From Geosiphon pyriformis uo1 (Eukaryota; Fungi; Glomeromycota), in NCBI GenBank assembly GCA_016748015.1, contig JAAOMT010000134.1, positions 378,757 to 442,756 of the forward strand: a stretch of 64,000 nucleotides of DNA. The letters run 5' to 3'. A model generated the notes under the pieces. The model saw nothing but the letters and a program-made list of their open reading frames with translations. It had not been told where the DNA came from and searched no databases. Positions 3,467 through 64,000 of this stretch are shown piece after piece. A program made the position numbers and the translations under genes. How positions within the stretch are numbered: the stretch's first letter is position 1; each line of letters starts with the position of its first letter.

Positions 3467-3519
3467 TTCAGCAAAAGAATATATAAAGACACAGTAGACG
3501 CGACAGGAAATATCAGAAA

Positions 3520-4149: not shown

Positions 4150-4162
4150 AAGGAGAAAATAA

Positions 4163-6751: not shown

Positions 6752-6753
6752 TT

Positions 6754-6770
6754 TAGTGCTCCTTGTGAGG
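6754..6770 (+). promoter_or_regulatory. Primer-binding site, probably tRNA-Ile(UAU)
   Basis: TAGTGCTCCTTGTGAGG 2 nt after the LTR. Restoring TAG to TGG gives the complement of a tRNA 3' end CCUCACAAGGAGCA-CCA, which resembles eukaryotic tRNA-Ile(UAU) ends. Confidence 0.7.
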
Positions 6771-6799
6771 TATAATTCTACAGAGAATCAGCACCAACA

Positions 6800-12700: not shown

Positions 12701-14037
12701 ACCCAATTGTTCAAGAAGAAATTATTTCAACAGAAACAAAAGAACATAAAACAACAATCAAAATATTTTATCAACCATCAAAATATACTTTACAAGAAAT
12801 TCAGATCAACCAATTAGAGTAATTATTGAACCAAAGAAAGAGACAGTACTATTTAACATATATTCAAATCCAACAGCAAGACATTTTTATAAAAAAGCAA
12901 CCATAGAAAGAACCAGAAAAAGATACTATTGGCCATCAATGTATTCAGATATTATTCAATACATTCAAAGTTGTGATGCTTGTCAAAAAAGAGGTGGAAC
13001 CAAACTCAATAAATTATTAAGACCAATCAAAGTGGGACAACCATTTAACCATATCAGAATCAACTTAGTTGGACTATTAATAATCATCAACAAAGACAAC
13101 AGATATATTGCAGTAGCCATGGACTATCTCACAAAATGGCCAGAAGCAAAAGCCATTCAAAGAGCAGATGCAGAATCCATTGCCGAATTCATTTATCAAG
13201 ACTTAATATGTTGACACGAATGCCCAAAAGAATTACTATTAGATCAAGGAACTCACTTTGTAAACAAAACATTAACAGAACTAAGTCAAAGATTTAGAAT
13301 TAAAAGACCATTGTCATTACCATACCATCCACAAACCAATGGATTAGTTGAAAGATTTAATAGAACACTGTATAAAGCAATTGCCAAGATCAGTCAAGAA
13401 AACCAGGACAAATGGAACTTGTTTATACCATCAGTATTATTTGCTTATTGGACAATAAAGCAAGACACTACACAAGTAACACTATTTAAATTAGTATATA
13501 GTAGAACAACAACATTACCAATTGAAATAGAAGCCAATACTTATCCAACAGAACCAATAAATAAAGACAATTTTCAGGAAATGTTACTAAAAAGAACATA
13601 TAACTTAATGGAAACACTAAAAAACAAATGGCAAAGAGCAGCTGATAACATCCAAAAGTCACAAAAAAAACAAAAAAAAAGACATGATAACCAACTACTA
13701 GAGAAACCAGTTGGATTCAAGATTGGAAACAAAGTACTTTTACATCATACCAAAGTGGAAAAACAATGGAGTAGAAAATTTGACCCCAAATAGGATGGAC
13801 CATTTCACATTAAAAAAATTCTTGGAAATGGAGCTTATAAATTAAGATGAGACAACAAAATCTTAGCCAAAGCAGCACATAGTGATTGACTGAAACCATA
13901 TTACCATATAGTGTCACCATCCACCAATAATATTCCACAATTGAGAGTACAAAGAATACTAGTTTAACCAGATGAGATTTCACAAGATCTGGAACCAATC
14001 ATAATTATTAAACCAAACACATAAAAGTTGAACAATA
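6800..14037 (+). pseudogene. Gypsy copy 2 gag-pol (gag, protease, Cys-rich domain, dUTPase, truncated RT, RNase H, integrase)
   Basis: ORF fragments 8248-8445, 10455-11465 (dUTPase motifs DAEFDL, SRSSLAKKG, IIDTRYVG, IAQAIF, KFGST), 12235-12621, 12939-13214, 13311-13793. Boundaries approximate. Confidence 0.9.
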
Positions 14038-31904: not shown

Positions 31905-32299
31905 TTCTGCAGCTTTAAGACCTGAATCAAGCTTTGATGGACCTTTCCTGCCACAAAAATCAAGTATTTTTGAATCTTGGGAATGCATTAAAGACGTTTT
32001 GACAAATATCACACTTGAAACAGTCTGTAAAAAGTGGTGCGGAATTTTCTAGGCCCACACCCACCCGTATAATATCTCTGTTAGGCTCGCTCAAAAAAAG
32101 CCATAATATCAGAGTATCACTCCCAGATGATTATGGGATTTTTGTAATCCCCTCACATACATCTTTATGGGAGCGACTAGTTTGGCTCTTAACAAAAGAA
32201 AGCATTGTCTGCTCGAGGCTTGCCTGCTTATCTATGCTTTCTCTCATTAGGAATGTGATCACACAGACAGACACCAATTTTCTGGATGATACTGCAGAA
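31905..32299 (-). ncRNA. Candidate structured RNA element (MTR4 3' UTR or independent ncRNA), family unidentified
   Basis: At least five 8-12 bp stems that pair fully only on the minus strand through G-U wobbles; see findings. Confidence 0.5.
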
Positions 32300-32356
32300 T
32301 TTAACCTCTTTTGAGCTAAAACGACTATTATAAATCCCTCGTGAATACGTACCAAA

Positions 32357-35300: not shown

Positions 35301-36659
35301 GTTGAAAGATGTCTTCACGAAATACACCTTTCTCGTCAACAACCATGTAAATCCCGTCAGTCCCTGACGGAAATACATAATGCTGTAAAGGTGTGGGGCG
35401 GAAATCGGTATACACGACATGGCAAGGCTAATAATATTGACGTGAATAAATTAAATAAGATGGGAGAAATAAAAAAAATAAATAAGATAAACTAAAATTT
35501 TTTACCTGTTCATGTATTTTGCATATCCATTCGGCGAATTCCATCGCGTTCGGAATAGTTGCCGATAAAAATACGTAATGAACTTGGTGAGGTAATAAGA
35601 TGATTGTTTCTTCCCATACAACCCCACGAGCTACCATCATTAATTAATGTTAAGAGTTAATAATTTGAATTTTCGACGACAAAAATTTGTGAAAAATTCC
35701 CAAAAATTACTTACTCTTGTCACGCATATAATGAATTTCATCAAAGACAACCCAAGCCACTTCACGCATAACTTCACTACCACGGTAAAGCATACTACGT
35801 AGAATCTACAGAAAATTGAGGGATCTTGAATTTACATAATATATTTCACCGCATATTTTGTAAAATACTAACCTCGGTTGTCATGACTAGGCAACTTGCT
35901 GTGGGGTTGATGGTTACATCTCCAGTCATCAATCCCACATCCCCAAATTCCTCTTGTAGTTCTCTATACTTTTGATTGCTCAGAGCCTATATTTAATGAG
36001 AATGAAAATTAGTTTTTCATGTAAATTTATGGATAGAAACTCGGGGATCAAAATTTTATAAAGGAAAATACTTTAATAGGACTGGTATAAATGACTCTTT
36101 GCTTATTTCTTAACCCTTGAGCAATAGCATATTCAGCGACAACTGTTTTCCCAGCTGAAGTGTGAGCACTAACCAATACAGACTCTGATCTTTCAATACA
36201 TTGAATAGAAACTTTTTGAAACGGATCTAATGTGAAAGGATATGTACGCGGCGGATCCGGTGGCGATACATGCTCGGATAGAGGAATGTATGGATAAGTA
36301 GGGGGAAGTGCTACTTGATGACGGACCTTTTAAAAGAAAAAAAAAATCTAGAGGCCTTGTTTGTTATTAGAAAATTATTCAAGTTGTGAAAATCTGACCT
36401 GGTGAGTTAACAGAACACTTTTATCTTCAGTGGGAAGATCAGAGGCCAAATTGATAGAGGCAGGAACTTCTCTAACAGCTTTTGTTTCGAAAACATCAGT
36501 CACAACCGGCAGTGGGGTCACGGTATATATCTTGGCCTTTTTTGTTTGTGATTCACGATCATCAATAGGATCAAGGTCGATGATTTCCTTGTTGAACCCA
36601 ACACCCAACCCTCTCTTTTTTGATCCAGAAGACGAATTAATACCGTCCCCTCTATACAT
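32357..36659 (-). CDS. MTR4: Ski2-like DExH RNA helicase Mtr4/Dob1 (TRAMP/exosome cofactor), multi-exon
   Basis: [87 protein letters not shown], arch/KOW region, C-terminal [13 protein letters not shown]-stop (TGA at 32357-32359). Confidence 0.96.
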
Positions 36660-36825
36660 TTTGACTTTTTATGTGGGAACACTCAAACAACTCGTTTTTT
36701 GATCTTTTTTTCTTTTGATAGTCACCAAATTGAAAATTTCATTTATCACGTGATTATGAGAAATTTATTTTAATGATATTAAATCATTTAATCAAGTTAA
36801 CGTATTATTATAATTTTTGATTGTA

Positions 36826-43168: not shown

Positions 43169-45510
43169 ATGGTTCAACGATCGGCCTCTGATCGAAATCC
43201 TACAAAACAAGAACAATGGTCAACGGGGCAGTTACCCTCTCAAATAATTATGCCTTTTGGACCTGGGCATATTATTGCTGATCCTGTTAGTGGATCAAAC
43301 TACGAAGTGGTTCAGCCTCTGGGGAATGGCTCTTATGCAATGGTATATTTGGTGCGCAATCTAAAAGATGACCAGTACTACGCCCTGAAGTGTCTGTCAA
43401 AAGCCAACATGGATCAACAGCAACTAGAAATTCAACGTAGTGAGGTAATTTCACAATTTTATCTTAACCTCAAAACTCCTCTTAATCATATTTTTATCAT
43501 GATCCATAATTTAGACTTGTAGAAATTTTGATTCATATTTTAACAATTCGCGATATTTAAATTTAACAACCTATCTTAGGTTTTGCTTCACGAAAGAGTT
43601 TCAGGTCACCCTAATATCGTATATCTCTATCATACTTTCGATACATCCGATTGGCTTTTCCTTGTCATGGAATATTGTGACGGTGAAGATCTTTACTATT
43701 GGCTCACACGGGAAAATGATCGTATAGACACCAGAACAGGACGTATGCTTTCGGAGCGCGAGCATCTTGAAGTTGTTCAACAGGTCTTTCTGCAGATGCT
43801 TGAAGCAGTCCATCATTGTCACAGTCGTGGCGTTGCGCATCGTGATTTGAAGCCGGAAAACTTTATTATTACGGTCGACAATAGGACTGGAAAAGTTAAG
43901 ATACAGTTGGCTGATTTTGGACTGGCTACGGATGAATTGGAATCGACAGATTTTGATTGCGGCTCCAAACCTTACATGAGTTTTGGTGAGCATTTATTTT
44001 TTTAATGAATAAACTCATTTTAAAGGAGAATAAACAAAACATTGATTTTTGTGCTCATCTTTCTACAGAATGTTATAATCCTGTTGGGGAAACCTACCGT
44101 CCTCGCATGTGCGATGTTTGGTCGCTGGGTGTGATTCTCATTAATATGATTTATCACCGGATACCTTGGTCTGCTCCACACCCCGAGGAATGTTCATCTT
44201 TTGCTGAATTCCAACGGGAAAAAGCCGACTTTCTAATGCGTAAATTCTATGAACCAAAACTTCCATACGAGGTTGCAGATTTCTTTGCAACTCGAATTTT
44301 TTGTATCCCCGAAAAAGGCCGCATAAGCGTTCACGAATTTAAAGTCTGGTGCCAAAATTTGGTACACATGATGATGGGATCCACCATTAATGTAAATAAT
44401 TTAGACCTACGTCGAATGTCAATCTCTTCGGCTACAAAGATGAATGAAGAAGCTGATATTGATTCCGAGAATCGTCATGTTTATGCTCGGAAAAAATCAT
44501 GGTCAGACGTCTTTGAGGAATCCATCGGTCTTGAAATGGACTTTACTATTCCTGTCATCTTCAAACACGAAGAGTTTAGCTCTCCTAACACTACCTTCCA
44601 AGACGAAGTGTATAATCCACCCATTATTAAGAACTCTAGGGCAGAACATGTCGAGTCGTATATATCGGAGGCTTCCAGAGAACGTGGTGATGTAAAAGAA
44701 ATAGAATATATAGATGACGAGCCACAAGTCGGCAATAATGCTAACAATAGTGATGCTGACTCCGGTTTTGGCACAGATGAAGATGGTACTGGAAACATTA
44801 TTCGCCGAGTGAGAGCCCAGCAGCATGAAGCTTCGGGCCCTAATAACACTAAAAATGCCTATTACAAAGTAGATATTTCTAAAACTCCGACCAAGGTGAT
44901 TTATTGTAGACCAAGGCCATGGGGTGAACAGAAGGATCTTAATAATCAGCGTGAACATGCCACAACTGTTAATGGGTCCCCTCCTAACGACCATTGGAGT
45001 TCTTACAAGCAACGTCGTGAGCGTTTGGAGCAGCGACGCAAAGAGAAAGAAGAAAAGAAATTGAATATGTTGGCACAGAATCGCCGTCGTGGATTAAGTG
45101 TTGGGTCAAGTGATGAACCTGGGAGCAATTCTTTCTCACGACGACCTCGTCCTCATCAACCTTCTCCCTCACATCCCAGAAGATTTTCCAAAATTGACCA
45201 TAATGTGGCTTCGCCCTCAAATTTCAAGAGAAGCTCTCTTCCGCCTAGTCCAACAAATATCAAGTATGCGAAATCAAATATAGGATCCGAGATCTACGCC
45301 GCCGGTTCCGGAACATCTGCTGGCGTTAAGAAAACATCTCCCGTCTCCCCGTCAACTGTGCGCAAGAATAATGGAGAAAATCCTATTCAATCTTCACAAG
45401 TTCCTAAAAAAGTTGCCAGATCCTCAAAGACTTCTTTAACCAAAATGTTGGAGAAAGTGGTTGCTTTTAACCGCGGAGTCAGAATTGCTGGCCAAGGTGT
45501 CTGCATTTAA
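43169..45510 (+). CDS. Ser/Thr protein kinase, fungal Ran1/Pat1-Ksp1-Sks1 group; 3 exons (43169-43444, 43580-43985, 44069-45510)
   Basis: LGNGSYAMVY, YALKCL, HRDLKPEN, LADFGLAT, CGSKPYMSFEC, DVWSLGVILINM; long disordered C-tail. Canonical GT-AG junctions restore the frame. Confidence 0.92.
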
Positions 45511-46262: not shown

Positions 46263-46521
46263 CACAACTACAACTACATCAACATCAGAAAAAAATAAAA
46301 ATAAAAACAAATATATTTGTACATATATATATATATTTTTTTGAATCAAACGACTGTTAAATGTTCAAAAATTTCAAAACCCTCTACTAACCGAATTATG
46401 CTTCCCAATCATTATAAAAAACAAAAATATGAAATCTAATTTTGGGGTCAGCTAGAGAGCTATAAAATAAAGTCTTCAATTTTATTTCTGAATAAATTTA
46501 GCCAGCTCCGCTACTCACAGC

Positions 46522-48291
46522 ATGGAAGATTATGCTCGCAAAGAAAGCGAATTCCAAGCTGGGATACCACCACGTCTTGTTTCCGTTTTTTATGCCGTCT
46601 TTGACGATGTCCAAGGCCCAAAAGTCGTGTACGAGGTTCCGGAAGGCTCCATAATTCCAAATTCAGAGTCCAATACTCAACCTATAATCGATTTCGACTC
46701 CGTTTACGAATATATCATTCCTAAAGAGTCTTTATGTGGTCACCTTGTCTCTTTTTGCACCGACTCTCACAAAGTCCTGGGGTTCCCAGTGTGGATCGAT
46801 AGCACAGAGTTTCGTGAATATAGACGAAACTTTTTCATGTTCAACTTGTGCTTTGTGTTTGACCGGAACGCGGATACTAGTAGTTATGATCCGGTAGTGC
46901 GAAAAATTGCTCGTGTATTGACTGGCTTGGAATTGGAAAGTGGATTTTTGTATCACGAAGGCACCAAGAAGATTATGTATAATGTAATTGAACAGTTATT
47001 AGAAGATTTGAATAGTTATTGTGAATGTCAAATCCCAATCAGTAAGTATTTAGTCGAAATGAATTCATGAAGAAAAGAAAAAGGGTACACTCATGTTAAC
47101 TAAATTTTTACAAAACTTTTTTTTGCTTTTCTCAGACTCGGCGAATACAATCAACTTGAAACTTTTCCCCACTTACCCGAACCCTCCATCAGTTTACGAT
47201 TATCAAGTGCCCATTTGCGCCGTCGATCTCGAAGCTTTGATGGATGTGAATTGGGATATCACCATGAAAAGTGTAAGTATGTGTGTGAATTCATTAAATT
47301 TTCCATTCTCTCTCTCAGTTACCATTAGAGATCGACCCTTCAATTTCCCAGATTGCCATAAAAATTAATGGGGTACATCATGTTAAGAAAGTTGCACAAT
47401 TGGCAGATGTTGATTATGGGCTCGCGAGAAAATGCATGGAGCATTTACTGTATGTACAGGAACAGTTTTTGATCGCTAGATTTTCCACTAATTTATTATA
47501 TTGGGAATTCAAGGTATTATGGTTGCATCATTATGGTAGATATCTTTCAGGTATTTTTTATTATCTCTTCAATAATTTTTTGAATCCTCTTAAAATTTTA
47601 ACTCAAGATGAACAACAATTTGGACGAACCCAGTTTTCTAATATCTACGCGATAAAACCGGATATAATGCGGGTGCTCGAGGATGAAGCAGTCCAGAATG
47701 AGTGTCTATCATATGTCACCAAACCTGGTAAAACGTTAAGATTATTCATGATTTCTCTGAGATCATGTCTTAATAGGTTTTGGAATTCCTCCCTCCTCCC
47801 TCCCCAAGGTTTAATGCCACCCTCTTTTGCAACCCTATTTTCTCTTTATTGTCAACTTAAGTATGGCCTCACACTCAAAGAATGGATTGAGGAAAACCAG
47901 GTAGCCTCGTTAAGCATTGATATAAGGTGATCAGAGTAATCGAATTAAGGGATTCCGGACTATTTATATATCTTAACCTAGAAGGTTTTTGTCATGTCTC
48001 ATTCAAGGCGATTTATAACGTTCGGCGTAATCAAGGGATTCCTATACCGAGTTCACAAATATCCCTTTCTCCCAGAAACCTCAGAGAGTTCTTTTCCTAC
48101 TAAATTGCGCAAGTAATAACAATCTGGAGCATCAGAATCTTGTATTTCCACGAGCTAATACATCTTCCCCATAAAGGATGCTTAACGGGAAGCATCATTA
48201 TGACGAGATTTGCACTCAGGAGGGATGCAGTGCCAAAGAGTTGGACGCAACGTTATCAGTGGAATCAGAGATCAAATTCATTTGGCGATAA
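46522..48291 (+). CDS. NPR2: Nitrogen permease regulator 2 (SEACIT/GATOR1 subunit), multi-exon
   Basis: VFYAVFDDVQGPKVVYEVP, YIIPKESLC, YRRNFFMFNLCFVF, LEDLNSYCECQIPI, NLKLFP, WDITM, IFQFSNIY, IDIRRFITFGVIKGFLYRVHKYP, GKHHYDEIC. Stop TAA 48289-48291. Confidence 0.95.
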
Positions 48292-49442: not shown

Positions 49443-51398
49443 ATGAGTCTTTCTCGACAACAGCGCATCACTATTTTACTTTTCATAGACACTATTTTCT
49501 TTTTTGCCGAGATAATAAGTGGTTATTATGTCGGTTCTTTGGCGCTGATTGCTGATTCGTTTCACATGTTAAATGATGTAATGAGCTTAATCGTCGCCGC
49601 TTATGCTATAAAGGTTGGTTAATTAAGTCGAATTTTAACCAAATACCAGTGTTTAATAGAATCTTGATCGTTTATTGTTCCCTTTCTCGTAGCTCGCTGG
49701 CAGGACAACTTTCGATTCTAATTATTCATACGGTTGGCAACGTGCCGAGGTTTTAGGAGCACTCATAAATGGTGTCTTCTTGCTTGCCTTATGCTTTAGT
49801 ATTTTTGTTGAGGCTCTAGAAAGGCTGTATTCGCCTCAAGGTATTGTTGCTGATGGTTATTGATCTCTTTTTCATGTCCTGGTTTCATTTCAGCTTCTTG
49901 ACTCCTTGATTCTTTTGAAGAAATTCGCAAACCTCTTTTGGTGCTCGGGGTTGGTTGTGCTGGCCTGGCTTCCAATATTATTGGATTAATATTATTCCAT
50001 GGTGGGTTTACTGTTATCAAACTTTTTTCATAACCAATGTTTTGAAGCAATAATCTAGTAATTTACCCTAATTTTATACCGTCAACTTTTTTAGAACATT
50101 CACACGAAGGACACTCACACTCATCGTCTGCTCCTCATTCTCATACGAAACAGATCGAAACGCAGTTAGATCATGAAAGAAGTTTGTCCACCCCATTAGA
50201 TGAAATACTGGTTTGTGGTCATCCCTCACAAGTTCGTCAATCCGTATTAGCCGCAGGAGCAGAACTGAAACAAAAAGAAAAAGAAGAGGGTAACGTAGAG
50301 GAAGATGAAATATATAATGATAATGATGATGATGTTGTTGTGGAAGAAGGGGACGAAACCATGGTCAATACCGGTGAAGGCTCTTCAGCAATATCAAAAT
50401 CTAGAGATAGAACTTTCGCGAAATTAAATGGTGATTCTCCCATCCCCGCCTCACAATCGCGTTCACGTCCACCCAGCTATGGTTCAGTTGACCGTGGTAC
50501 TACATTCAAAAATGAGCAGGAGGATGAAAACAATGCTCATACTCAGGAGAAGCCAGTCCAAAAAAGCCACAAAAACCTCAATATGCAGGGCGTTTTTCTC
50601 CATGTTCTTGGCGATGCGTTAGGCAATATTGGTGTGATTGCCACTGCTTTATTTATCCAATATACAACCTTTGAATGGAAGAACTTGGCAGATCCTATTA
50701 TAAGGTACTTGATCATACCAATTCATATTTTCACATTGATTTTTCCTACAAAATTCTAATCTATTCTTTTCATCAGTTTAATTATAACTTGTATAATATT
50801 CTCGACAGCTCTACCTCTTGGTATGAATATTTTTTAATTCATTTGAGCTTTATTTTAATTTAATACAGTATGTGAACTTGACTTTTAAAATCAATTTCAG
50901 TTCGAAGTGCTTCGTCTATTCTTTTGCAAGCTGTCCCATCTGGTATACCAATCGACGAAGTGCGTAGTAAATTACTCCGTGTAAGTCCTCCACCTGATGC
51001 ATTTGGATAATTTATAAAATTATATATCTGGCTATGTGCAATATCTCAAACTTTTCTGCGATTCTTAGACACAAGGGGTACAATCTGTACATGAGCTTCA
51101 TATCTGGCAGTTATCTGACACAAAGCTCATAGCATCTGTTCATGTGCATCTCGATCAATCCCGTAATTACATGACAGTCGCAGCAAACATTAGAAGAATA
51201 TTGCATTTATATGGAATTCACTCAGCGACGATCCAACCAGAATATAAAAAAATAGAACCGAAATCATTGAATACTGTGACCGATTCACATGAAGAGTCGC
51301 ATTGTCTATTACGTTGTGCTGATGATAATTCATGCGAGCAACATGAATGTTGTTCTAGACCGGCGGTGGCACAGCAGCCTGTTTCGTATAAAGATTGA
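49443..51398 (+). CDS. ZRC1: Cation diffusion facilitator zinc transporter, ZRC1/COT1 (ZnT1)-like, multi-exon
   Basis: SLALIADSFHMLND, YSYGWQRAEVLGALINGVFL, His-rich loop HEHSHEGHSH, LNMQGVFLHVLGDALGNIGVI, VHELHIWQL, GIHSATIQPE, Cys-rich tail. Confidence 0.93.
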
Positions 51399-52575: not shown

Positions 52576-55500
52576 CTATTCTGAGGCTAAACAGCGGTTG
52601 CTATCACTAACATATTCATTGACAATGAAACGGGCAGCTTCAATAGCACGTTTAGTAATGTCCTCCCTAGGGCCTTGAATGCCTTTGCTTTTGAACAGTC
52701 TTTCAACCTCTTCAGTAGCTAATTTTTCGATGAGCTGCTGTGATGCATCGCTGTTGTGGGCTTGACGATTATGAGTTTCTTCACGTGAATGCCTATATCT
52801 ACAGATGGTCTCAGCGGCGGCACCGGCAACAAGATGTTCAGAATTTAAGGAGACGGTTTTATGAACTACGGTACGTTCACTTTCCCAACCAGATTCTCCT
52901 TCAACCTTTTCCCATTTCCCCTTCGAAGTGAAAGAGGAAACGGATTTTTCAACAAAATAATGGTGGGTTGCTTGTAATAATTCTTGTTCCAACGCGGCAT
53001 CACCAATTTGCGCCCTAATCCAAGAGCGGGCACGTTCATATTCGGTCTTCAAGTGTCCCTCATGGCTTTTGTGAACTTCCTCAATGTAAACTAGAGTAAG
53101 GGCAGTTTCGTAGACAGAGGAATCCAAGTTTCGGAGACGATCACTTTGCACGTTTTGTCGGATTGAAGACGTCAAGACATTAGTGGTGATCCGAAGATTG
53201 TTCGAGATGGATTGGTGAAGAGTGAAAGACCCATTATGTTGCTGAGCAGAAACCAAGCTCTTGATTTCTTCAACAGAAGAAGTGTCGCGAAGTTTTTGAA
53301 TAGCTTCTTGTTTCAATTCTTCAGTAACTTCAATTTCATGCTCAGTTACTTCTACCGAACTAATTACTTTTTCAATTACCAGTTTTTCAGAAGTAGCCAA
53401 AAGTTCTTTTTCTAGTTCGTGGTCACCTATTTGATTCTTCAGGTATTGGCGTGCGAGTTTGGATTGTTCTTGCCACGATTGTTTATGAGCGACCGAAGTT
53501 TTTTCGAGATATGAAATGACGATTGCGGTTTGCCACCAAGAAGGTTTCGCGGCTTTCTTAAGTTTGTCACTGATTTGATATTCATGAATAGAATCAGTGA
53601 AGTTGTCCCCTTCGATTTGAAGTTGATAAGAGACTTGGTGACTAATTTCAAAAGATCCGTCCTGTTTTTGTTTCGAGATAGCCTCTTGAGCCACTTCAAG
53701 TGGGATCGAATTTTGAATAGCAGTCAGGATTGCTTCCTGCTTTTCTTGGGAATATTCTTTTTTATCACCAATTCTTTTACGCGTGGTTTTGCGTTGAGTG
53801 GCTCCTTGTTGGAGGATAACCTTTCGTGTAACTTTTTCAACTACAAACTTTTCAGACACTTGAAGAATTTCTTCTTCCAATTTGGAATCTTTGATCTCGT
53901 GTCTGAGATAATTTCTGGCTTCATCATATTTGGCTTGCCAATGGGAATCATGGGCCGAAGAAGTCTTTTTGAGGTAGGCAAGAGTGACAGCGGTTGACCA
54001 CCAAGTAGGTTTAGCAGATTTCTTGAGTTTTTCACTGACTTCATAATTTTGTACAGAGGTGATCAAATTTTCCGAAGATGAAATGTCAAGTTCATCGGTA
54101 ATAACATTGGTCAATTCGAATGATCCGTTATCTTTCTGTGCCGATATTATCGATTGTGCAGTTTCGACAGTGGTCTTAGATGCAATAATGTCATTAAATA
54201 CAGCTTCTTGAATTTCAGAAGAACTTGCTGCTTTTGAAACTACTAATTTCTGAGTGGCCTTTTCAACCACAAATTCCTCTGAAGTTTTAATTATTTCTTC
54301 TTCCAGAGTAGAATCATTAATTTCATCTTTAAGATATTTTCGGGCTTTTTCGTACTCGGTTTGCCAATGTGATTGATGATTAGCTGAAGCCTTTTTGAGA
54401 TAAGCGAGAGTAACAGCGGTCGTCCACCAAGAAGGTTTGGCGGATTTTTTCAAATTTTCGCTGATCTCATGTTTGTGAATTGCGGCTACTAGGCTTTCAG
54501 AGGATGATATATCCAACTCTTGTGCTACCACTTGACTTAGTTCAAAAGACCCATTTTTCTTTTGAGAAGAAATTACTGTTTGTGTAGTTTCGACCGTCGT
54601 TTTTTCTTGTATCTCGGATACAGCTTGTTTTTGCCCTTCATGAGAGTGCCATAAAAGAGCACCGGTACCAGCAACAATTGAACCAATTATACCCGCAGTT
54701 ACCAACGAAGATTTTTGTTTTCCCTTCACTTCATGATCATCATTGTGTTGTTGTTGTTGCTGCTGCTGCTGCTGTTGTTGTTGAGTATTGACAGCTGTAA
54801 CTTGGGTTTCTTTTCTTTGGTCTACCTTTTTTATATTACCTAAATCTACTTGTTGTTCTGTTTCGGAGCCAACTATTTTACTAGATTGAGTTTTCGTCTT
54901 GTCAACAGTCTCTTTGAGGCTTTCCTGAGTAGTATGAGCGCCACCGGTTTGAGTTTTCGTCTTGTCAACAGTCTCTTTGAGGCTTTCCTGAGTAGTATGA
55001 GCGCCACCGGTTGCTGTTTCGACGCCTTGTTGAGTTGAAGATACTGTACCCGTGGTATTTTTGTTCTTATCGGTAATCTTTTCAGTTAAAGTATGAGCTC
55101 CTTCTTTAACTGATGCGGCTATACCTTCGGCGCCTTCATGTGCCTTTTTGCCCAAGAAGTAGAGAGCGGTTCCTCCTAGACCAGCGGCAGCAACTCCAGC
55201 AATAGCAGTGACTCCGGCGGTCTTTTTAGCAAAATGACCAGCAGAGCTAGCGATATCGGAAATCGTGGAAGTGGTATCAGAAAGTCCATGGGAGATTTTA
55301 GATTTTAAGGATTCTTCGGCTTCTACCGCAGTCTTGGATACGACTTTGTGAGTGATTTTTTCGACAACATACGTCTCGGATACTTGAAGAATTTCTTGTT
55401 CTAATTGAGCATCTTTAATTTCAGCGCTAAGGTACTTGCGAGCTTCATCGTATTTGGTTTGCCAAAGGGAATTATGGGCGGAGGACGTTTTCTTCAAATA

Positions 55501-58500
55501 TGCAATGGTAACTGCCGTTGTCCACCATGAAGACTTTGCGGATTTCTTGAGTTTTTCATTGTTGGTATATTTCACTATTGAGTTGACCAAAGTTTCAGAA
55601 GACGAAATGTTCAAATGATCTGAAACCACTTTACTCAGTTCAAAGGATCCATCATGTTTTTGAGCGGAAATAATGGAGTTAGTCGTTTCAACGGTAGTTA
55701 GTGATGCGGTCTCACTGATTGCAAGTTTTTGCGTCTGTTCTGATTTAGTGGCCTGACTTACAAGAGCTTTTTGAGTAGCTTTTTCAATGACAAACTTTTC
55801 GGAAACAAGTAGAATTTCCTCTTCTAATTTAGCGTCATTAATCTCGGATTTAAGATATTGAACAGCTTGGTCATGCTTGGCCTTCCAATGAGTTTCGTGT
55901 GAAGAAGAGGTATTCTGAAGGTACGCGATGGTGACGGCAGTTGTCCACCATGAGCTCTTGGCCGATTTTTTGAGTTTATCACTGATCTGGTATTTTTGAA
56001 CTGAAGAGACTAAGGTGTCGGAGGAAGTAATATCCAGCTCTTGAAGTACTACTTTACTTAATTCAAAAGATCCATTTTGTTGCTGAGAGGAGGCGATGGT
56101 TTCAATTTTTTCAACAGTGGTCTTGGATTGAATATCGTTCAAGACTGCTTGTTGCTTTTCCTGAGAATGCCACGCAAGAGTTCCACCAACTGCGGCCGCT
56201 CCACCAGCAGCAGCGAGACCTAGTAAGGTTGCTTTCTGTGAGAGCCATGACGAATTTTCTTTCTTTTCTTCTAAATGAGCTTCATTGGCTTTAGAGGCGG
56301 TCTGAGAGACGGCTTTATGGGTAAGTTGTTCAACTACGAAAGCTTTGGATACAACGAGAACTTCATCTTCCAAACTGGCATCCTTTATTTGTTCGCTGAG
56401 ATACTTGCGAGCTTCATCGTGTTTGGTTCTCCAGATTGAATCGTGCTCCTTGGCTGTTTGATCTAGATAGGCGATTGTGATACCAGTTGTCCACCATGAT
56501 GATTGAGCGGATCGCTTTAGCTTCTCGGTCGTAATATATCCTTGAATTGATTTTACCAATGTTTCAGAAGAGGCGAATCCGAGTTTCTCTGAAATCTCTT
56601 TGCTTAATTCAAAGGATCCGTCATGTTTCTGCGAGGAAATAATTGATTCGGTAGTTTTAACAGAGGTCTTGGATGCAATATCTTGAATAACAGCCGATTG
56701 GGTTTCTTTGGATTTGGAAGCTTTTTGAATAACAACTTTTTGTGTGGCTTTTTCGACTACGAATTTTTCTGAAATTCCAAGAATTTCCTGTTCTAACTTG
56801 GAATCGTTGATTTCTAATTTGAGATACTGCCGGGCTTGATCATATTGTTCTTGCCAGTGAGATTGATGAGCCGAAGAAGTGTTTTTAAGATATGCCAAAG
56901 TGACTGCAGTTGTCCACCAAGACGTCTTTGCTGATTTCTTAAGTTTCTCACTGACTTCGTATTTGTTAATTGATGCGACAAGGGATTGAGTCGAGTTAAT
57001 ATCAAGCTCATCTGAAATAACCTTACTTAAAACAAAAGACCCGTCTTGTTGATGCGATGATGAAATAATGGTTTGAGCCGTCTCAACTGTTGTTTTCGAT
57101 TGAATCTTTTCTAAAGCAGCCTTTTGTTCTTCATGAGAGTGCCAAGCAAGACCACCAATAGTCGCAGCAACACCGCTAGCAAGTCCAAGTCCAAGCACTG
57201 AACTCTTTGATATCCAAGATTCTCGTTCTTTCTTTTCAGTTTTCTTGGCAACTTCTTCTTTTATATGTGCTTCATGAACTTTAGCCGCAGTCTGAGACAC
57301 TGTTTGGTGTGTAATCTTTTCCACGACAAAGGACTCGGAGACTTGAAGAATTTCTTTTTCCAATTCAGCATCCTTTATCTCGGTGCTAAGATATTTGCGG
57401 GCTTCTTCATATTTAGCCAGCCATAATGAAGAATGAGTTGTTGAAGTTTGTTTAAGATAGGCTAATGTAACGGCGGTTGTCCACCAGGAAGCCTTCGAGG
57501 ATTTCTGGAGTTTTTCACTGGTAGCGTATTGTTGAACAGATTTCACCAAGGATTCAGTGGAGGACGTATTGAGTTGGTTCGAGATAACGGTACTTAGCTC
57601 AAAAGAACCGTCTTTTTTCTGATGAGATACAATGGATTGGACGGTCTCAGTTGTCGTTTTAGATGCAACCTGATCGATGGCAACTTTTTGTGTATTTTCC
57701 GATTTAGTCGCATTTTGAATGACAACTTTTTGGGTAGCTTTTTCAATCACGAATCTTTCCGAAACTTTGAGGATCTCTTCTTCTAAGGTAGCATTATTGA
57801 TTTCCGCGCTAAGATATCTACGAGCTTCATCGTATTTGACTTGCCATTGCGATTGGTGGGTAGATGAGACATTCTTAAGATAGGCAATAGTGATTGCAGT
57901 GGTCCACCAAGAGGTTTTCGCTGTCTTTTTAAGGTTTTCACTGAGCTCGTATTTTTGGACAGAGGTGACAAGAGATTGAGTGGAGGTGATATCAAGTTCT
58001 TCAGAGATAACCTTGCTTAATTCAAATGAACCATTTTTTTTTTGCGATGAGATGATGACTTGAGTAGTTTCAGGTGTCGTCTTTGATTGGATCTTTTCTA
58101 AAGCAGCCTTTTGCTCTTCACGCGAGTGCCATGCAAGGCCACCGATAGTTGCAGCAACACCACCGGCAAGTCCAAGTCCGAGTGCTGCACTCTTGGATAT
58201 CCAGGATTCTCGTTCTTTCTTGTCTTCTTTTTTGGCAACTTCTTCTTTCTTGTGAGCTTCTTCAACTTTTATTGCAGTCTGAGAGACCACATTATGAGTT
58301 AACTTTTCAACTACGAAAGCTTTGGATACAACGAGAACTTCATCTTCCAAACTGGCATCCTTTATTTGTTCGCTGAGATACTTGCGAGCTTCATCGTGTT
58401 TGGTTCTCCAGATTGAATCGTGCTCCTTGGCTGTTTGATCAAGATAGGCGATTGTGATACCAGTTGTCCACCATGATGATTTAGCAGATCGCTTTAGCTT

Positions 58501-61500
58501 CTCGGTCGTAATGTATTCTTGAATTGATTTTACCAATGTTTCAGAAGAGGCGAATCCGAGTTTCTCTGAAATCTCTTTGCTTAATTCAAAGGATCCGTCA
58601 TGTTTCTGCGAGGAAACAATTGATTCGGTAGTTTTAACAGAGGTCTTGGATGCAATATCTTGAATAACAGCCGTTTGGGTTTCTTTGGATTTAGAGGCTT
58701 TCTGAATGACTGCCTTCTGGGTAATCTTTTCGACAACAAAATTTTCAGAGACATGTAAAATTTCTTCTTCCAAATGAACGTCATTTATTTGCAAACTAAG
58801 ATATTTGCGGGCTTCATCATATTTCGCTTGCCAGTGGGATTGATGTGAAGAAGCAGTTTTCTGGAGGTAAGCAAGGGTAACTGCCGTTGTCCACCATGAG
58901 GCCTTTGTCGATTTCTTGAGTTTTTCGCTAACCTCATATTGCTGGATGGAGGTAACCAAATTCTCGGAGGTTGAGATGCCGAGTTCCTGCGAGATAATTT
59001 GACTTATTTCAAAAGATCCATCCTGCTTTTGACTAGATATAATTGTTTGCGTAGTTTCAACGGTTGTCGTTGATTCAACCTTTGCAAGCGCCGCTTTTTG
59101 CTCCTCATGCGAATGCCATGCAAGACCGCCAATGGCCGCGGTAGCAGCAGTAGCAAGACCGAGACCAAGCGTTGCGCCTTTAGACAACCAGGACTTGTCA
59201 TCTTTCTTTTCTTGTTTTTTATCAAGTGCTTCTTCATGGATTTTGGTGGCAGTCTCTGACACTGTTTTGTGGGTTAGCTTTTCGACCACAAAAGTCTTGG
59301 ACACAAGGAGAATTTCCTCTTCCAAAGAAGTATCCTGGATTTGTTCATGGAGGTACTTGCGAGCTCGATTGTATTTAGTTTTCCAGATGGAATCATGGGT
59401 ACCGGCAGTTTGAACTAGGTAGCTAATTGTGATGGCAGTCGTCCACCATGATTGCTTAGCAGATCTCTTCAGCTTTTCGGTCGTAACGTATTTTTGAATT
59501 GATTTTATTAATGTTTCAGAGGAGGTGAACCCGAGTTGCTTAGTTATATCTTTGCTTAATTCAAAGGACCCGTCATATTTCTGAGCAGAGGCAATTGATT
59601 TAACAGTTTCTACACTAGTTTTTGATGCAATGTTCTTGATAACAGTTTTCTGAGTCTCTGTAGATTTGGCGGCTTGTTCGACCACAGCTTTTTTAGTGAT
59701 TTTTTCAACAACAAATAACTCTGAAACATGCAAAATTTCTTCTTCCAAATGAACGTCCTTTATTTGTGAGCTCAAATATTTCCGTGCCTCATCATGTTTA
59801 ACTTTCCAAACGGAATCATGGGCAGATGAACTTTTTTCGAGATAAGCAAGAGTAACCGCAGTTGTCCACCAAGAGGTCTTTGCTGATTTTCGAAGTTTCT
59901 CACTTAACTCATATTTTTGAAGAGTGGCAACCAATGTCTCTGTAGAAGAAACATTAAGTTGTTCTGCGATGACTTTACTGAATTCAAATGAACCGTCGTG
60001 ATTATGTGAGGATAAAACCTTTTGAGTTGTGTGGGGTTTTGTCTTTTTCTGTAGCTCAACTATAGCAGCATTTTGCTTTTCATGCGAGTGCCAAGCAATA
60101 CCACCGCCTAAAGCAGCGCCTACGCCACTGAGTAGACCGGTTTTTAATAGACGAGACTCAATTTTTTGTTCCTCTGCATGTTTAGTTTCTTGAATTTTCG
60201 TTTCAAGCTTTTTAGTTTCCTGCTGTTTGACATTTGTATGGGTCTGATGGGCTTCCTGAACCTTGGATGCTGTTTGAGCCACCGTGGTTTGTGTTACCTT
60301 TTCGACTACGAATGTCTCTGAAACTTGGAGAATCTCTTCTTCCAACTTGGAATCATTGATCTCGTTGCTAAGGTATTTACGGGCTTCTTCATATTTAGCT
60401 TTCCAGATAGAGTCATGAGCTGTGGAAGTTTGCTTAAGATAGGCGAGAGTTACCGCAGTTGTCCACCAGGAGGGCTTGCTGGTTTTCCGCAATTTTTCGC
60501 TTGTCGTATGACTTTGAACAGAACTTACCAAAGTTTCAGAAGAGGAGACGTTGAGTTGATTAGAAATCACTTTGTTTAGTTCAAAAGAACCGTCTGTTTT
60601 TTGAGACGAGAGGATGGTTTTGGTTGTTTCTACACTAGTTTTAGAAGCGAGTTCCTTGATTACTGACTCTTGAGTTTCCTTAGACTTGGAAGCATTGGTC
60701 ACGAGGACTTTTTGGGTTACTTTCTCCACAACAAAAGTATCTGAAACCCTTAAAATTTCTTCTTCCAAACTATTGTTCTTGATTTCAAGCCTAAGATATT
60801 TTCTGGCCTCGTCATACTTTGCTTGCCAAACTGCATCATGAGCCGATGAAGTATTTTTGAGATAAGCAATAGTAATAGCGGTTGTCCACCAGGACGTTTT
60901 GGCCGTTTTCTTTAACGTTTCACTAACTTCGTATTTCTCAATTAAGCTAACTAATGTTTGTGAAGATGAAATGTCCAACTCTTTCAACACTACTTGACTC
61001 AACTCAAATGACCCATTCTTATTCTGGGAAGATAGTATAACTTTGGTGGTGTCCACTGTAGTTTTCGATTGGATTTCGGTTAGAGCAGCTTTTTGTTTTT
61101 CCTGAGAGTGCCATGCAAGAGCGCCACCTATCGCAGAAACGCCACCAACAATACCAAGGCCAGCCAAAGCAGTTTTTGAGATCCATGATGAATTTTCTTT
61201 CTTTTCTTCTAAATGAGCTTCGTGGGCTTTAGAGGCGGTCTGAGAGACGGCTTTATGGGTAAGTCGTTCAACTACGAAAGCCTTGGATACAATGAGAACT
61301 TCATTTTCCAAACTGTCATCATTTATTTGTTCGCGGAGATACTTGCGAGCTTCATCGTGTTTGGTTCTCCAGATTGAATCGTGCTCCTTGGCTGTTTGAT
61401 CAAGATAGGCGATTGTGATACCAGTTTTCCACCATGATGATTGAGCGGATCGCTTTAGCCTATCGGTCGTAATGTATTCTTGAATTGATTTTACTAATGT

Positions 61501-64000
61501 TTCAGAAGAGACGAATCCGAGTTGTTCAGATATCTCTTTGCTCAATTCAAAGGACCCGTCATGTTTCTGAGTGGAGGCAATTGATTGGGCAGTTTCTAGA
61601 GTAGTTTTTGATGCAATTTCATTGATAACCGCTTTTTGAGTTTCCTCAGATTTGGAAGCTTTTTGAACAACAACTTTTTGGGTGGCTCGCTCGATCACGA
61701 ATTTTTCCGAAATTTCGAGAATCTCTTGTTCCAACTTTTCATCGTTAATTTCTGAATGAAGATAATGGGCAGCCTGCAAATATTTGTCTTTCAAGTGAGA
61801 TTCCTCTGAAGATGTAGTGTTCTTAAGGTAGGCAATAGTGACAGCGGTGGTCCACCAAGAGGTCGTTGCTGTTTTCTTAATCTTTTCACTAATCTCGTAT
61901 TGATGAATCGACGAGATGAGAGACTGAGTTGAAGTGATATCGAGCTCATCTGAGACCACCTTGCTTAATTCAAAAGATCCGTCCTTTCTTTGGGATGATA
62001 CAATGGTTTGAATGGTTTCCGAAGTTGTCTTTGATTTAATTTTTTCTAACGCAACTTTTTGCTCTTCACGTGAGTGCCAAGCCAAGCCGCCAATAGTCGT
62101 AGCGACACCAGTAGCAAGTCCAAGTCCAAGAATAGCACTCTTTGAGAACCATGACTCTCTTTCCTTTTCCTCATTCTTTTTTGTTATTTTTTCCTCTAAA
62201 TGAACTTCATTGACTTTAGCTGCGGTTTGAGCAACTTCTTTATGCGTTACCTTCTCTACCACAAATGTTTCAGAGACCTGCAAAATTTCTTCCTCTAATT
62301 TGGCGTCTTTGATCTCCAAGCTTAGGTATTTTCGGGCTTCGTCATATTTTGTTTGCCAGTGCGAATCGTGAACAGAAGCCTTCTTCAGATATGCAAGTGT
62401 GACGGCAGTTGTCCACCATGAGGCGTTTGCGGATTTCTTGAGCCGTTCACTGGTCGCATATTGCTGGATGGAGGTCACTAAAGTTTCAGACGATGAGACA
62501 TCCAATTTTTCAGAAATCACTTTATTCAACTCAAAGGAACCATCAGTTTTCTGTGAGGAGAGGATAATGTCAGTGGTTTCAAGGGTAGTTTTAGAAGCGA
62601 CATCATTCAGGACAGCTTTTTGAGTTTCTTGAGATTTGGAGGCTTTCTTGATAACTTCCTTCTGAGTAGCTTTCTCAACTACGAATTTATCCGAAACTTG
62701 AAGGATTTCCTCCTCTAATTTGGCATCACGAATTTCGAGACTCAAATACTTGCGAGCTTGATCATATTGGGATTTCCAATTAGCTTCATGAGCAGTCGAA
62801 GTTTGCTTCAAATAGGCGAGAGTAACAGCGGTTGTCCACCAGGAAGCCTTTGAAGATTTTTTAAGCTTTTCACTAACTTCATATTTTTGAATGGAGCTAA
62901 CTAAAGTTTCCGAGGAGGAGATGTCCAAATCTTCGGATACGACCTTGGTTAAATGGAATGAGCCGTCAGTTTTTTGGGCGGACACGATGCTCTGGGTGGT
63001 TTCCGCTGTTGTCTTGGATTGTATCTTAGCAATGGCAGCTTTTTGTTCTTCATGCGAATGCCATGTAAAACCACCTATAGCCGCCGTGGCAGCCGTGGCG
63101 ATACCTAGGCCGAGAACAGTACCCTTAGACAACCAGGATTCGCGTTCTTTCTGTTCTTTTTGTTGATTCAATTTTTGACCGAGATGCTCTTCGTGAACTT
63201 TGGTCGCAGTTTGAGAGACAGTTTTGAGGGTGACCTGTTCAATTACATAGGTATTTGATGCTCGCAGAATCTCCTCTTCCAATTTCGTGTCTTTGATCTC
63301 AGCGCTAAGATATTTTCGAGCCGCTTCGTATTTGGCTTTCCAGATAGAATCATGCGCAGCAGAAGTGTTCTTTAGGTAAGCAATAGTAATGGCCGTCGTC
63401 CACCATGAAGATTTAGCAGATTTCTTGAGCGTTTCGCTAGAAGTGTATTGATTAACTGACGCTATTAAATTATCAGACGAGGAAACGTGAAGTTGATCCG
63501 AAATCACTTTGTTTAATTCAAATGAGCCGTCAGTTTTTTGAGAAGAAATAATGGACTGAGTGGTTGCAAAAGTTGTGTCCTTGGAAATTTGCTTCAAAAC
63601 AGCTTCTTGAGTTTCCTTGTGCTGGGACGCACCAGTGACAATGACTTTTTTGGTAATTTTTTCAACAACAAACGTCTCAGAAATGTGCAAGATTTCTTCT
63701 TCTAGTTTTGCGTCATTGATTTGTGAACTAAGATACTTTCGGGCTTCATCGTGCTTAGCTTTCCAGACAGAATCATGAGTCGAGGAGGTTTTTTGAAGGT
63801 AAGCAAGGGTAACTGCAGTTGTCCACCACGAGGCTTTTGCTGAATTTTTAAGCTTTTCACTGATCTCATACTTTTGTACTGAAGCAACCAGTTTTTCGGT
63901 GGATGAAATGTCGAGCTGCTCGGCGATAACTTTACTCAATTCAAAAGATCCATCAGTCTTGTGAGATGACACAATTTTTTCAGCGGTCTCGACACTTGTT
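52576..64000 (-). CDS. Giant intronless repeat protein (>3,800 aa; N-terminus outside window): 22 QxxDGSF/WWTTA helical repeats, 10 Gly/Ala hydrophobic segments, C-terminal CipC/DUF3759-like domain
   Basis: Uninterrupted ORF 52576-63972. The frame stays open to the window edge (TSVETAEKIVSSHKTDGSF), so the track's start is an internal GTG. Confidence 0.92.
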   Translation of the reverse strand, partial: TSVETAEKIVSSHKTDGSFELSKVIAEQLDISSTEKLVASVQKYEISEKLKNSAKASWWTTAVTLAYLQKTSSTHDSVWKAKHDEARKYLSSQINDAKLEEEILHISETFVVEKITKKVIVTGASQHKETQEAVLKQISKDTTFATTQSIISSQKTDGSFELNKVISDQLHVSSSDNLIASVNQYTSSETLKKSAKSSWWTTAITIAYLKNTSAAHDSIWKAKYEAARKYLSAEIKDTKLEEEILRASNTYVIEQVTLKTVSQTATKVHEEHLGQKLNQQKEQKERESWLSKGTVLGLGIATAATAAIGGFTWHSHEEQKAAIAKIQSKTTAETTQSIVSAQKTDGSFHLTKVVSEDLDISSSETLVSSIQKYEVSEKLKKSSKASWWTTAVTLAYLKQTSTAHEANWKSQYDQARKYLSLEIRDAKLEEEILQVSDKFVVEKATQKEVIKKASKSQETQKAVLNDVASKTTLETTDIILSSQKTDGSFELNKVISEKLDVSSSETLVTSIQQYATSERLKKSANASWWTTAVTLAYLKKASVHDSHWQTKYDEARKYLSLEIKDAKLEEEILQVSETFVVEKVTHKEVAQTAAKVNEVHLEEKITKKNEEKERESWFSKSAILGLGLATGVATTIGGLAWHSREEQKVALEKIKSKTTSETIQTIVSSQRKDGSFELSKVVSDELDITSTQSLISSIHQYEISEKIKKTATTSWWTTAVTIAYLKNTTSSEESHLKDKYLQAAHYLHSEINDEKLEQEILEISEKFVIERATQKVVVQKASKSEETQKAVINEIASKTTLETAQSIASTQKHDGSFELSKEISEQLGFVSSETLVKSIQEYITTDRLKRSAQSSWWKTGITIAYLDQTAKEHDSIWRTKHDEARKYLREQINDDSLENEVLIVSKAFVVERLTHKAVSQTASKAHEAHLEEKKENSSWISKTALAGLGIVGGVSAIGGALAWHSQEKQKAALTEIQSKTTVDTTKVILSSQNKNGSFELSQVVLKELDISSSQTLVSLIEKYEVSETLKKTAKTSWWTTAITIAYLKNTSSAHDAVWQAKYDEARKYLRLEIKNNSLEEEILRVSDTFVVEKVTQKVLVTNASKSKETQESVIKELASKTSVETTKTILSSQKTDGSFELNKVISNQLNVSSSETLVSSVQSHTTSEKLRKTSKPSWWTTAVTLAYLKQTSTAHDSIWKAKYEEARKYLSNEINDSKLEEEILQVSETFVVEKVTQTTVAQTASKVQEAHQTHTNVKQQETKKLETKIQETKHAEEQKIESRLLKTGLLSGVGAALGGGIAWHSHEKQNAAIVELQKKTKPHTTQKVLSSHNHDGSFEFSKVIAEQLNVSSTETLVATLQKYELSEKLRKSAKTSWWTTAVTLAYLEKSSSAHDSVWKVKHDEARKYLSSQIKDVHLEEEILHVSELFVVEKITKKAVVEQAAKSTETQKTVIKNIASKTSVETVKSIASAQKYDGSFELSKDITKQLGFTSSETLIKSIQKYVTTEKLKRSAKQSWWTTAITISYLVQTAGTHDSIWKTKYNRARKYLHEQIQDTSLEEEILLVSKTFVVEKLTHKTVSETATKIHEEALDKKQEKKDDKSWLSKGATLGLGLATAATAAIGGLAWHSHEEQKAALAKVESTTTVETTQTIISSQKQDGSFEISQIISQELGISTSENLVTSIQQYEVSEKLKKSTKASWWTTAVTLAYLQKTASSHQSHWQAKYDEARKYLSLQINDVHLEEEILHVSENFVVEKITQKAVIQKASKSKETQTAVIQDIASKTSVKTTESIVSSQKHDGSFELSKEISEKLGFASSETLVKSIQEYITTEKLKRSAKSSWWTTGITIAYLDQTAKEHDSIWRTKHDEARKYLSEQIKDASLEDEVLVVSKAFVVEKLTHNVVSQTAIKVEEAHKKEEVAKKEDKKERESWISKSAALGLGLAGGVAATIGGLAWHSREEQKAALEKIQSKTTPETTQVIISSQKKNGSFELSKVISEELDITSTQSLVTSVQKYELSENLKKTAKTSWWTTAITIAYLKNVSSTHQSQWQVKYDEARRYLSAEINNATLEEEILKVSERFVIEKATQKVVIQNATKSENTQKVAIDQVASKTTTETVQSIVSHQKKDGSFELSTVISNQLNTSSTESLVKSVQQYATSEKLQKSSKASWWTTAVTLAYLKQTSTTHSSLWLAKYEEARKYLSTEIKDAELEKEILQVSESFVVEKITHQTVSQTAAKVHEAHIKEEVAKKTEKKERESWISKSSVLGLGLASGVAATIGGLAWHSHEEQKAALEKIQSKTTVETAQTIISSSHQQDGSFVLSKVISDELDINSTQSLVASINKYEVSEKLKKSAKTSWWTTAVTLAYLKNTSSAHQSHWQEQYDQARQYLKLEINDSKLEQEILGISEKFVVEKATQKVVIQKASKSKETQSAVIQDIASKTSVKTTESIISSQKHDGSFELSKEISEKLGFASSETLVKSIQGYITTEKLKRSAQSSWWTTGITIAYLDQTAKEHDSIWRTKHDEARKYLSEQIKDASLEDEVLVVSKAFVVEQLTHKAVSQTASKANEAHLEEKKENSSWLSQKATLLGLAAAGGAAAVGGTLAWHSQEKQQAVLNDIQSKTTVEKIETIASSQQQNGSFELSKVVLQELDITSSDTLVSSVQKYQISDKLKKSAKSSWWTTAVTIAYLQNTSSSHETHWKAKHDQAVQYLKSEINDAKLEEEILLVSEKFVIEKATQKALVSQATKSEQTQKLAISETASLTTVETTNSIISAQKHDGSFELSKVVSDHLNISSSETLVNSIVKYTNNEKLKKSAKSSWWTTAVTIAYLKKTSSAHNSLWQTKYDEARKYLSAEIKDAQLEQEILQVSETYVVEKITHKVVSKTAVEAEESLKSKISHGLSDTTSTISDIASSAGHFAKKTAGVTAIAGVAAAGLGGTALYFLGKKAHEGAEGIAASVKEGAHTLTEKITDKNKNTTGTVSSTQQGVETATGGAHTTQESLKETVDKTKTQTGGAHTTQESLKETVDKTKTQSSKIVGSETEQQVDLGNIKKVDQRKETQVTAVNTQQQQQQQQQQQQHNDDHEVKGKQKSSLVTAGIIGSIVAGTGALLWHSHEGQKQAVSEIQEKTTVETTQTVISSQKKNGSFELSQVVAQELDISSSESLVAAIHKHEISENLKKSAKPSWWTTAVTLAYLKKASANHQSHWQTEYEKARKYLKDEINDSTLEEEIIKTSEEFVVEKATQKLVVSKAASSSEIQEAVFNDIIASKTTVETAQSIISAQKDNGSFELTNVITDELDISSSENLITSVQNYEVSEKLKKSAKPTWWSTAVTLAYLKKTSSAHDSHWQAKYDEARNYLRHEIKDSKLEEEILQVSEKFVVEKVTRKVILQQGATQRKTTRKRIGDKKEYSQEKQEAILTAIQNSIPLEVAQEAISKQKQDGSFEISHQVSYQLQIEGDNFTDSIHEYQISDKLKKAAKPSWWQTAIVISYLEKTSVAHKQSWQEQSKLARQYLKNQIGDHELEKELLATSEKLVIEKVISSVEVTEHEIEVTEELKQEAIQKLRDTSSVEEIKSLVSAQQHNGSFTLHQSISNNLRITTNVLTSSIRQNVQSDRLRNLDSSVYETALTLVYIEEVHKSHEGHLKTEYERARSWIRAQIGDAALEQELLQATHHYFVEKSVSSFTSKGKWEKVEGESGWESERTVVHKTVSLNSEHLVAGAAAETICRYRHSREETHNRQAHNSDASQQLIEKLATEEVERLFKSKGIQGPREDITKRAIEAARFIVNEYVSDSNRCLASE
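54886..55011 (-). repeat. Exact 63-bp tandem duplication within the giant ORF (TGGAHTTQESLKETVDKTKTQ x2)
   Basis: Visible at both DNA and protein level. Confidence 0.95.

Follow-up and report, generated by a model that had tools for sequence, protein, structure and literature searches.

The gene described here is predicted to encode a 7,917-aa protein of Geosiphon pyriformis whose architecture appears to be undescribed: each of its parts belongs to a known domain type, and by the features tested it fits no described family. At the level of sequence, it is confirmed as a real protein-coding gene whose tail half lies inside the window, the 64,000-nt stretch of DNA that was analyzed (contig C710, positions 378757-442756). 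From N- to C-terminus, the predicted protein contains a ricin-B beta-trefoil, a C2 domain, two helical units, a second C2 domain, two further units, a third C2 domain, a long array of units and a tail resembling CipC/DUF3759. What might such a protein do? Some scaffolding role at lipid surfaces is probable in our judgment. Our analysis favors, as a plausible and still tentative reading, a cytosolic multivalent cross-linker of membranes and lipid surfaces, with wound clotting as its most likely use.

On the minus strand, a frame without stops runs from 63999 to 52579 of the window, giving 3,807 codons with the stop at 52576, and in the adjoining contig DNA it extends upstream to 6,600 codons in total. 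The absence of an intron over 11.4 kb among intron-rich neighbors, pointed out in the preliminary description, agrees with a scan of the giant exon for AT-rich, intron-like stretches, which found none. The features are as follows, in window coordinates except where the contig is named.

52576-64000, minus strand: 3' 11.4 kb of the 19,736-nt last exon, coding for the C-terminal 3,807 aa of the 7,917-aa gene
C710:442757-451067: remainder of the giant exon, with 18 further units and 4 further inserts
C710:451179-456469 (ATG at 456469): exons 1-8, with the ricin-B trefoil followed by C2-unit-unit-C2-unit-unit-C2-unit
55327-64000, minus strand: nine pairs of helical units of ~125-140 aa (exon units 19-36), with a 16-aa linker within each pair and an insert-bearing linker after it
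63061-63123, minus strand: Gly/Ala-rich apolar insert
62077-62139, minus strand: Gly/Ala-rich apolar insert, the sole segment of the three-unit model with pLDDT<50
61111-61173, minus strand: Gly/Ala-rich apolar insert
60091-60141, minus strand: Gly/Ala-rich apolar insert, 17 aa, the weakest
59116-59178, minus strand: Gly/Ala-rich apolar insert
58129-58191, minus strand: Gly/Ala-rich apolar insert
57142-57204, minus strand: Gly/Ala-rich apolar insert
56170-56232, minus strand: Gly/Ala-rich apolar insert
55150-55221, minus strand: atypical apolar insert without the WHS ending
54604-55326, minus strand: irregular 241-aa linker holding a poly-Gln tract, two inserts and a 63-nt tandem duplication with identical copies (54886-55012)
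54649-54711, minus strand: final apolar insert
52915-54603, minus strand: last four units (37-40), without inserts, the final two more divergent
52579-52845, minus strand: C-terminal CipC/DUF3759-like domain (last ~90 residues) with a near-terminal Cys, kept in orthologs

The predicted gene model has nine exons, with all eight introns GT-AG and in consistent phases, and 23,754 coding nt. In alignment, exons 1-8 are colinear with a Funneliformis ortholog; the spliced model was searched one exon at a time rather than as a joined protein. The whole gene holds 45 helical units, 40 of them in the giant exon, together with 14 inserts, and profile and exon searches of the Geosiphon genome found it in single copy. 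The head had been invisible from the window, and the preliminary description had raised a signal peptide or VIT and VWA domains as possible upstream elements. A signal peptide was looked for in the giant protein and is absent, and neither VIT nor VWA gave a Pfam match in the exons scanned or in the ortholog P0001; the trefoil and C2 domains occupy the head instead. Searching the window frame against Pfam returned summed-repeat noise such as DUF736, with no stretch that passed, and these hits were rejected.

Could the repeat array be an artifact of assembly or annotation? We regard this explanation as vanishingly improbable. Units within the exon are on average 50% identical (maximum 95%), identity among them by codon position is 69/85/41%, and different codons are used at 55% of identical residues. 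Because of this codon-position pattern and the synonymous codons, we infer that the array arose by old duplications under purifying selection, not by assembly error. The copies are thus diverged, the nine GT-AG exons stay in frame, and orthologs of 7,754-7,762 aa lie on megabase contigs in several Rhizophagus irregularis assemblies, all of which argues against the misassembly that had been considered at the outset.

The neighboring genes in the window show no visible link to the giant gene. Those that are intron-rich encode an MTR4-like DEAD/DEAH helicase (32000-36700, minus strand), a protein kinase (43580-45507, plus strand), NPR2 (46492-47927, plus strand) and a CDF zinc transporter (50046-51395, plus strand). 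Positions 1-14000 hold degraded remnants resembling LTR retrotransposons, with reverse transcriptase, RNase H and integrase-like frames recognized by eye, and within this region a dUTPase domain lies at 10419-11462 (Pfam E 6e-15).

With a profile made from the repeat, 22 units are recognized in the window, as initially counted, the first beginning 2 nt past the window edge. The proposed pattern of a pair followed by an insert holds for the nine pairs; it breaks down over the last four units, which have no insert and lead into the CipC-like domain. What had been taken for two domains, A and B, is a single domain in paralogous copies. The pairs of the Geosiphon array are ~65-70% identical, and in a quick tree the pre-insert copies cluster together weakly. 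From 123 aligned copies, AlphaFold2 predicts a domain of seven helices, with a small hairpin where the QxxDGSF motif lies (pLDDT 88). The suggestion that this motif is a variant of the QW motif is consistent with a weak superposition of the region on C4d-type QW folds, which are alpha/alpha-toroids (Z 6-6.5).

To which known domain is the unit related? A resemblance to the C-terminal domain of VWA5A/PARP4-type proteins had been proposed, and it is the VWA5A side of that proposal that stands. The unit profile weakly matches the last exon of Geosiphon's own VIT-VWA genes, hhalign joins the two (96.6%, E 6.7e-10, 101 columns), and a predicted-structure search with the unit retrieves VWA5A-like and VWA_3 cluster models at TM 0.66-0.69. 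Homology of the unit to the VWA5A-type C-terminal helical domain is therefore supported. A specific link to PARP4 MINT (9bw6_B) is only suggestive, with Z 5.2-5.9 and an rmsd of 4.4-5.5 A over 107-108 aligned residues, values in the range of common helical matches, and no sequence match between MINT and the unit. The best solved structure is 9e5c_4t, the C-terminal part of a trypanosome axonemal chain (Z 9.4), to which a VIT-VWA query gave no sequence match. PDB sequence searches with one super-repeat and two profiles yielded nothing significant, Foldseek of the unit against the PDB gave nothing at E<=0.001, and an Atlas feature search with one unit returned unnamed clusters only. PF26490, a precomputed annotation on the ortholog P0001, may be a newer Pfam model of the unit. 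The Geosiphon genome itself carries at least four near-identical VIT-VWA gene copies on C394, C434 and C595 (L039-L042), two of them 27 kb apart on C595 with N in the middle.

MINT is a protein-binding domain that binds MVP (PMC12280208), so the giant protein could also be a protein-binding polymer, a cytoplasmic matrix or filament whose units, in the manner of MINT in PARP4, serve as docking sites for numerous partner copies, with the Gly/Ala inserts acting as self-association zippers, not lipid binders. The unit model spans the whole MINT domain at its upper Z of 5.9, the best PDB match, 9e5c_4t, is a domain of a trypanosome axonemal protein, and in VIT-VWA genes of Gigasporaceae the VWA core is followed by array-type units. 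We nevertheless consider such a polymer unlikely, since it leaves unexplained both the C2 head and the amphipathic helix that orthologs carry in the slot of the insert. An MVP match is also absent from the Geosiphon genome, in a search that, like the one for ricin-B, had no positive control and is uninformative.

All ten Gly/Ala segments reported in the window were located as uncharged runs of 17-24 residues; the one near 55185 departs from the reported WHS ending and sits inside the irregular linker. Their spacing is 321-344 aa in the window and 170 aa for the last. The inserts are Pro-free (the giant exon has 9 Pro in 6,600 aa), and some contain GxxxG motifs. Those of Geosiphon are evenly apolar (hydrophobic moment 0.22-0.33, Kyte-Doolittle maximum 1.3-1.85), whereas ortholog inserts in the same slot are amphipathic helices (moment 0.40-0.65, Kyte-Doolittle maximum <=0.7) with shuffle p-values, taken one by one, of 0.005-0.5; those of two orthologs, P0011 and P0026, have clear 11-mer repeats. 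On a rough insertion-energy scale, for relative use only, the Geosiphon inserts score +1.5 to +3.7 versus -1.2 for the hairpin of Geosiphon's own tricalbin, making them ~3 kcal/mol less hydrophobic. In the three-unit model all units are well folded and the insert alone is unmodelled, which places the inserts, in this prediction, outside the soluble fold.

The low insertion score, the amphipathic helices of orthologs and the position of the insert outside the fold make both transmembrane passes and classical hairpin anchors unlikely. The preliminary description had already doubted true transmembrane passes. A polytopic protein that crosses the membrane in 14 helices, its units facing alternate sides, would account for the uncharged runs, their KD19 of up to 1.85 and the occasional GxxxG, but it is very improbable given the insertion energies, insert flanks that are identical and not alternating, the lack of a signal peptide and the absence of a comparable segment in orthologs. 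The monotopic anchors favored in its place are not supported as classical hairpins either: there is no proline knot, and the deficit relative to the tricalbin hairpin and the amphipathic counterparts weigh against them as well. Shallow lipid-surface binding, or self-association, fits best. In Entrophospora almost all array units are followed by an insert, in Geosiphon every second one and in Rhizophagus and Gigasporaceae every third; the Funneliformis ortholog has three among 35 units sequenced, and the N-terminal units are insert-free in the proteins examined. Because of these last two observations, the units must have a role beyond lipid binding.

The three C2 domains of the head are closest to a C2 of Geosiphon's tricalbin (38% over 89 aa). 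The first shares with it two phase-1 intron positions, one directly ahead of the first strand and one within the Gly of GKSDPY, which points to direct descent from the tricalbin C2. The tricalbin gene itself, at C657:202497-207031 (L046, L047), encodes a hairpin, an SMP domain and several C2 domains. Across orthologs the C2 loops keep exposed aromatics, and of the five acidic Ca2+ ligands three or four are retained. In each of the three C2 domains Asn or Ser stands in place of the fourth, and the fifth is variable. There is only one ricin-B beta-trefoil, at the N-terminus. Exon by exon, the head is 38-55% identical to that of the Funneliformis ortholog. The tail of the Geosiphon protein scores 18.2 bits against PF12585 (cut-off 25; E 0.0025), with an Atlas feature match of 0.83, while the tails of orthologs P0018 and P0113 exceed the cut-off (28.9 and 29.2 bits). 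Ortholog tails have a Cys at or near the end, and the tail is possibly lipidated. CipC has been found at the membrane in Cryptococcus (PMC13267614). Two more CipC/DUF3759 loci in the genome are above the Pfam cut-off (C642:95083-95435 and C664:1029861-1030179).

How widespread is this architecture? The unit profile was compared with 1.84 billion representatives and gave 428 matches, many of them multi-copy. All named matches that were looked up are from Glomeromycotina, namely Funneliformis, Rhizophagus, Gigaspora, Cetraspora, Scutellospora, Racocetra, Dentiscutata, Acaulospora, Diversispora and Entrophospora, so that the multi-copy arrangement, whose range had been left as a question, extends lineage-wide over ten named genera. 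In length-limited searches no ortholog was found outside arbuscular mycorrhizal fungi (AMF), where matches were tricalbin-type proteins covering the C2 part only. R. irregularis has a complete ortholog of 7,754-7,762 aa in several assemblies, which has 48 units and whose head and tail match those of the Geosiphon protein; nine more AMF genera contributed fragments. This ortholog (OCT59_011149 / XP_066000955.1) is annotated merely as hypothetical or C2-containing, and a literature search found no paper naming its accessions and no description of the architecture, in line with the earlier suspicion that it was undescribed.

In the quick unit tree, which has many open forks, the insert-bearing units of Geosiphon form a clade of their own (support 99), separate from the Rhizophagus triplets. 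By this separation, the two arrays expanded independently, yet the two complete proteins end at a similar size, 45-48 units and 7,750-7,920 aa. The triplet repeats of R. irregularis (P0155 units 16-42) are nearly identical, a sign of recent homogenization. Such lineage-specific expansion and near-identical repeats would be expected of a spore or hyphal storage protein, or of inert bulk filler in which unequal crossing-over sets the repeat number as a side effect. We find this quite improbable, as the head and tail are conserved, the units are under purifying selection and a similar final length was reached separately.

Other combinations of the same parts occur in AMF. In Gigasporaceae a VIT-VWA core is followed by one or more array-type units, ricin-B, C2 and another unit (P0201, P0212, P0200, P0216, P0214, P0052), the array units occupying the usual place of the VIT-VWA tail domain; its presence in four genera (Racocetra, Gigaspora, Dentiscutata, Scutellospora) means that this fusion is probably real. 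Kinase-like domains are joined to array pieces in the AMF models P0004, P0005, P0031, P0037, P0083, P0094, P0188 and P0193, which could be genuine shuffling or joins made in the annotation of short-read assemblies.

How would a cross-linker of lipid surfaces work? The three tricalbin-type C2 domains would dock the head on acidic membranes, with Ca2+ probably helping. The helical units would serve as spacers and as beads that bind each other or a partner, the periodic inserts would sit in the surfaces of droplets and vesicles, whether lipid monolayers or bilayers, and the Cys-ended, CipC-like tail may provide a second membrane attachment. One molecule could then hold a dozen or more organelle surfaces and link them to the cell membrane. 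By analogy with the Gellins of Mucorales, the most likely purpose in a hypha that is aseptate and full of lipid would be to clot the cytoplasm at a wound. A C2 and trefoil head points to a regulated membrane tether or plug, and the cross-linker is further favored by the intron positions held in common with a tricalbin whose SMP is confirmed, by the well-modelled unit fold beside an unmodelled insert, by the amphipathic and 11-mer inserts of orthologs, by the membrane localization of CipC and by an insert period that varies among separately expanded arrays of similar final size. The scarcity of inserts in Funneliformis and among N-terminal units counts against it. The narrower proposal, in which Ca2+ that enters at a wound of Glomeromycotina recruits the C2 head to the membrane and droplets and vesicles are cross-linked into a plug by the inserts, is possible though doubtful. 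The substituted fourth and variable fifth ligands make Ca2+ triggering less certain. The unit also looks like a stable bundle of helices and shows nothing of the shear-unfolding beta-trefoils that Gellins have.

AMF are rich in lipid, and the same anatomy, including the amphipathic and 11-mer inserts of orthologs, would equally suit a constitutive coat or clustering scaffold of lipid droplets, akin to perilipin-4. The inserts would then lie on droplet monolayers, the bead chain would space, stabilize or bundle droplets for storage and streaming, and the C2 domains would tether them to the cortex or ER. This seems to us somewhat unlikely: there is no Pfam match to perilipin or caleosin and no proline-knot hairpin, and we know of no droplet coat with three C2 domains and a lectin-like head. 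A literature search found no AMF lipid-droplet proteome.

Why does this gene matter? How aseptate AMF hyphae stop bleeding is an open question in a 2025 review, which notes that in AMF Woronin bodies are unseen and Gellins undetected (PMC12712441). The giant gene offers one concrete candidate for wound plugging, and since it is single-copy in Geosiphon and has a complete ortholog in R. irregularis, the model species, it opens that question to testing. If the wound reading is true, the lineage-specific chemistry of the inserts might relate to the differing healing behavior of AMF families. If the protein is a droplet scaffold instead, it would bear on how lipid, the symbiosis's carbon currency, is stored and transported. 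On either reading, a VIT-VWA tail domain that is normally single-copy became a chain of 45-48 beads.

By the features tested, the giant protein falls outside the VIT-VWA, tricalbin, Gellin and perilipin families. It shares with VIT-VWA proteins such as VWA5A and PARP4 a homologous C-terminal helical domain; these have one copy of it together with VIT and VWA, whereas the giant protein has 45 copies and neither of the other two. With tricalbins and extended synaptotagmins it has the tricalbin-type C2 in common, but their SMP domain and N-terminal ER hairpin are absent from exons 1-8, and a giant helical array is present instead. Perilipin-4 and alpha-synuclein bind lipid through 11-mer amphipathic helices. 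The ortholog inserts are likewise amphipathic and sometimes 11-mer, but they are short, have folded domains between them and take a Gly/Ala apolar form in Geosiphon; the giant protein has neither a Pfam match to a PAT domain nor, with Pro-free inserts of 17-24 aa, a long proline-knot hairpin. CipC/DUF3759 (PF12585) normally stands alone at ~100 aa, and here a domain resembling it forms the C-terminus. AHNAK, with its giant repeat exon, and ferlins, with their C2-based membrane repair, are analogies only, homology being limited to generic C2 similarity. Gellin, described by Nguyen et al. in 2021, reportedly has ten trefoils, and its hallmarks are gelation induced by flow and bleeding when its function is lost. 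Gellins of Mucorales are described as large modular proteins with beta-trefoils and hydrophobic segments that gel at wounds (PMC12712441, PMC10873517). The giant protein is likewise large and modular, comes from an aseptate member of Mucoromycota, combines a beta-trefoil with hydrophobic segments and is proposed to do the same job; Gellins, however, are tandem beta-trefoil arrays, whereas it has one trefoil, an alpha-helical repeat and a C2 head. If it does clot wounds, it would represent an all-helical counterpart of Gellin that evolved independently and was built from tricalbin, VWA5A and CipC parts.
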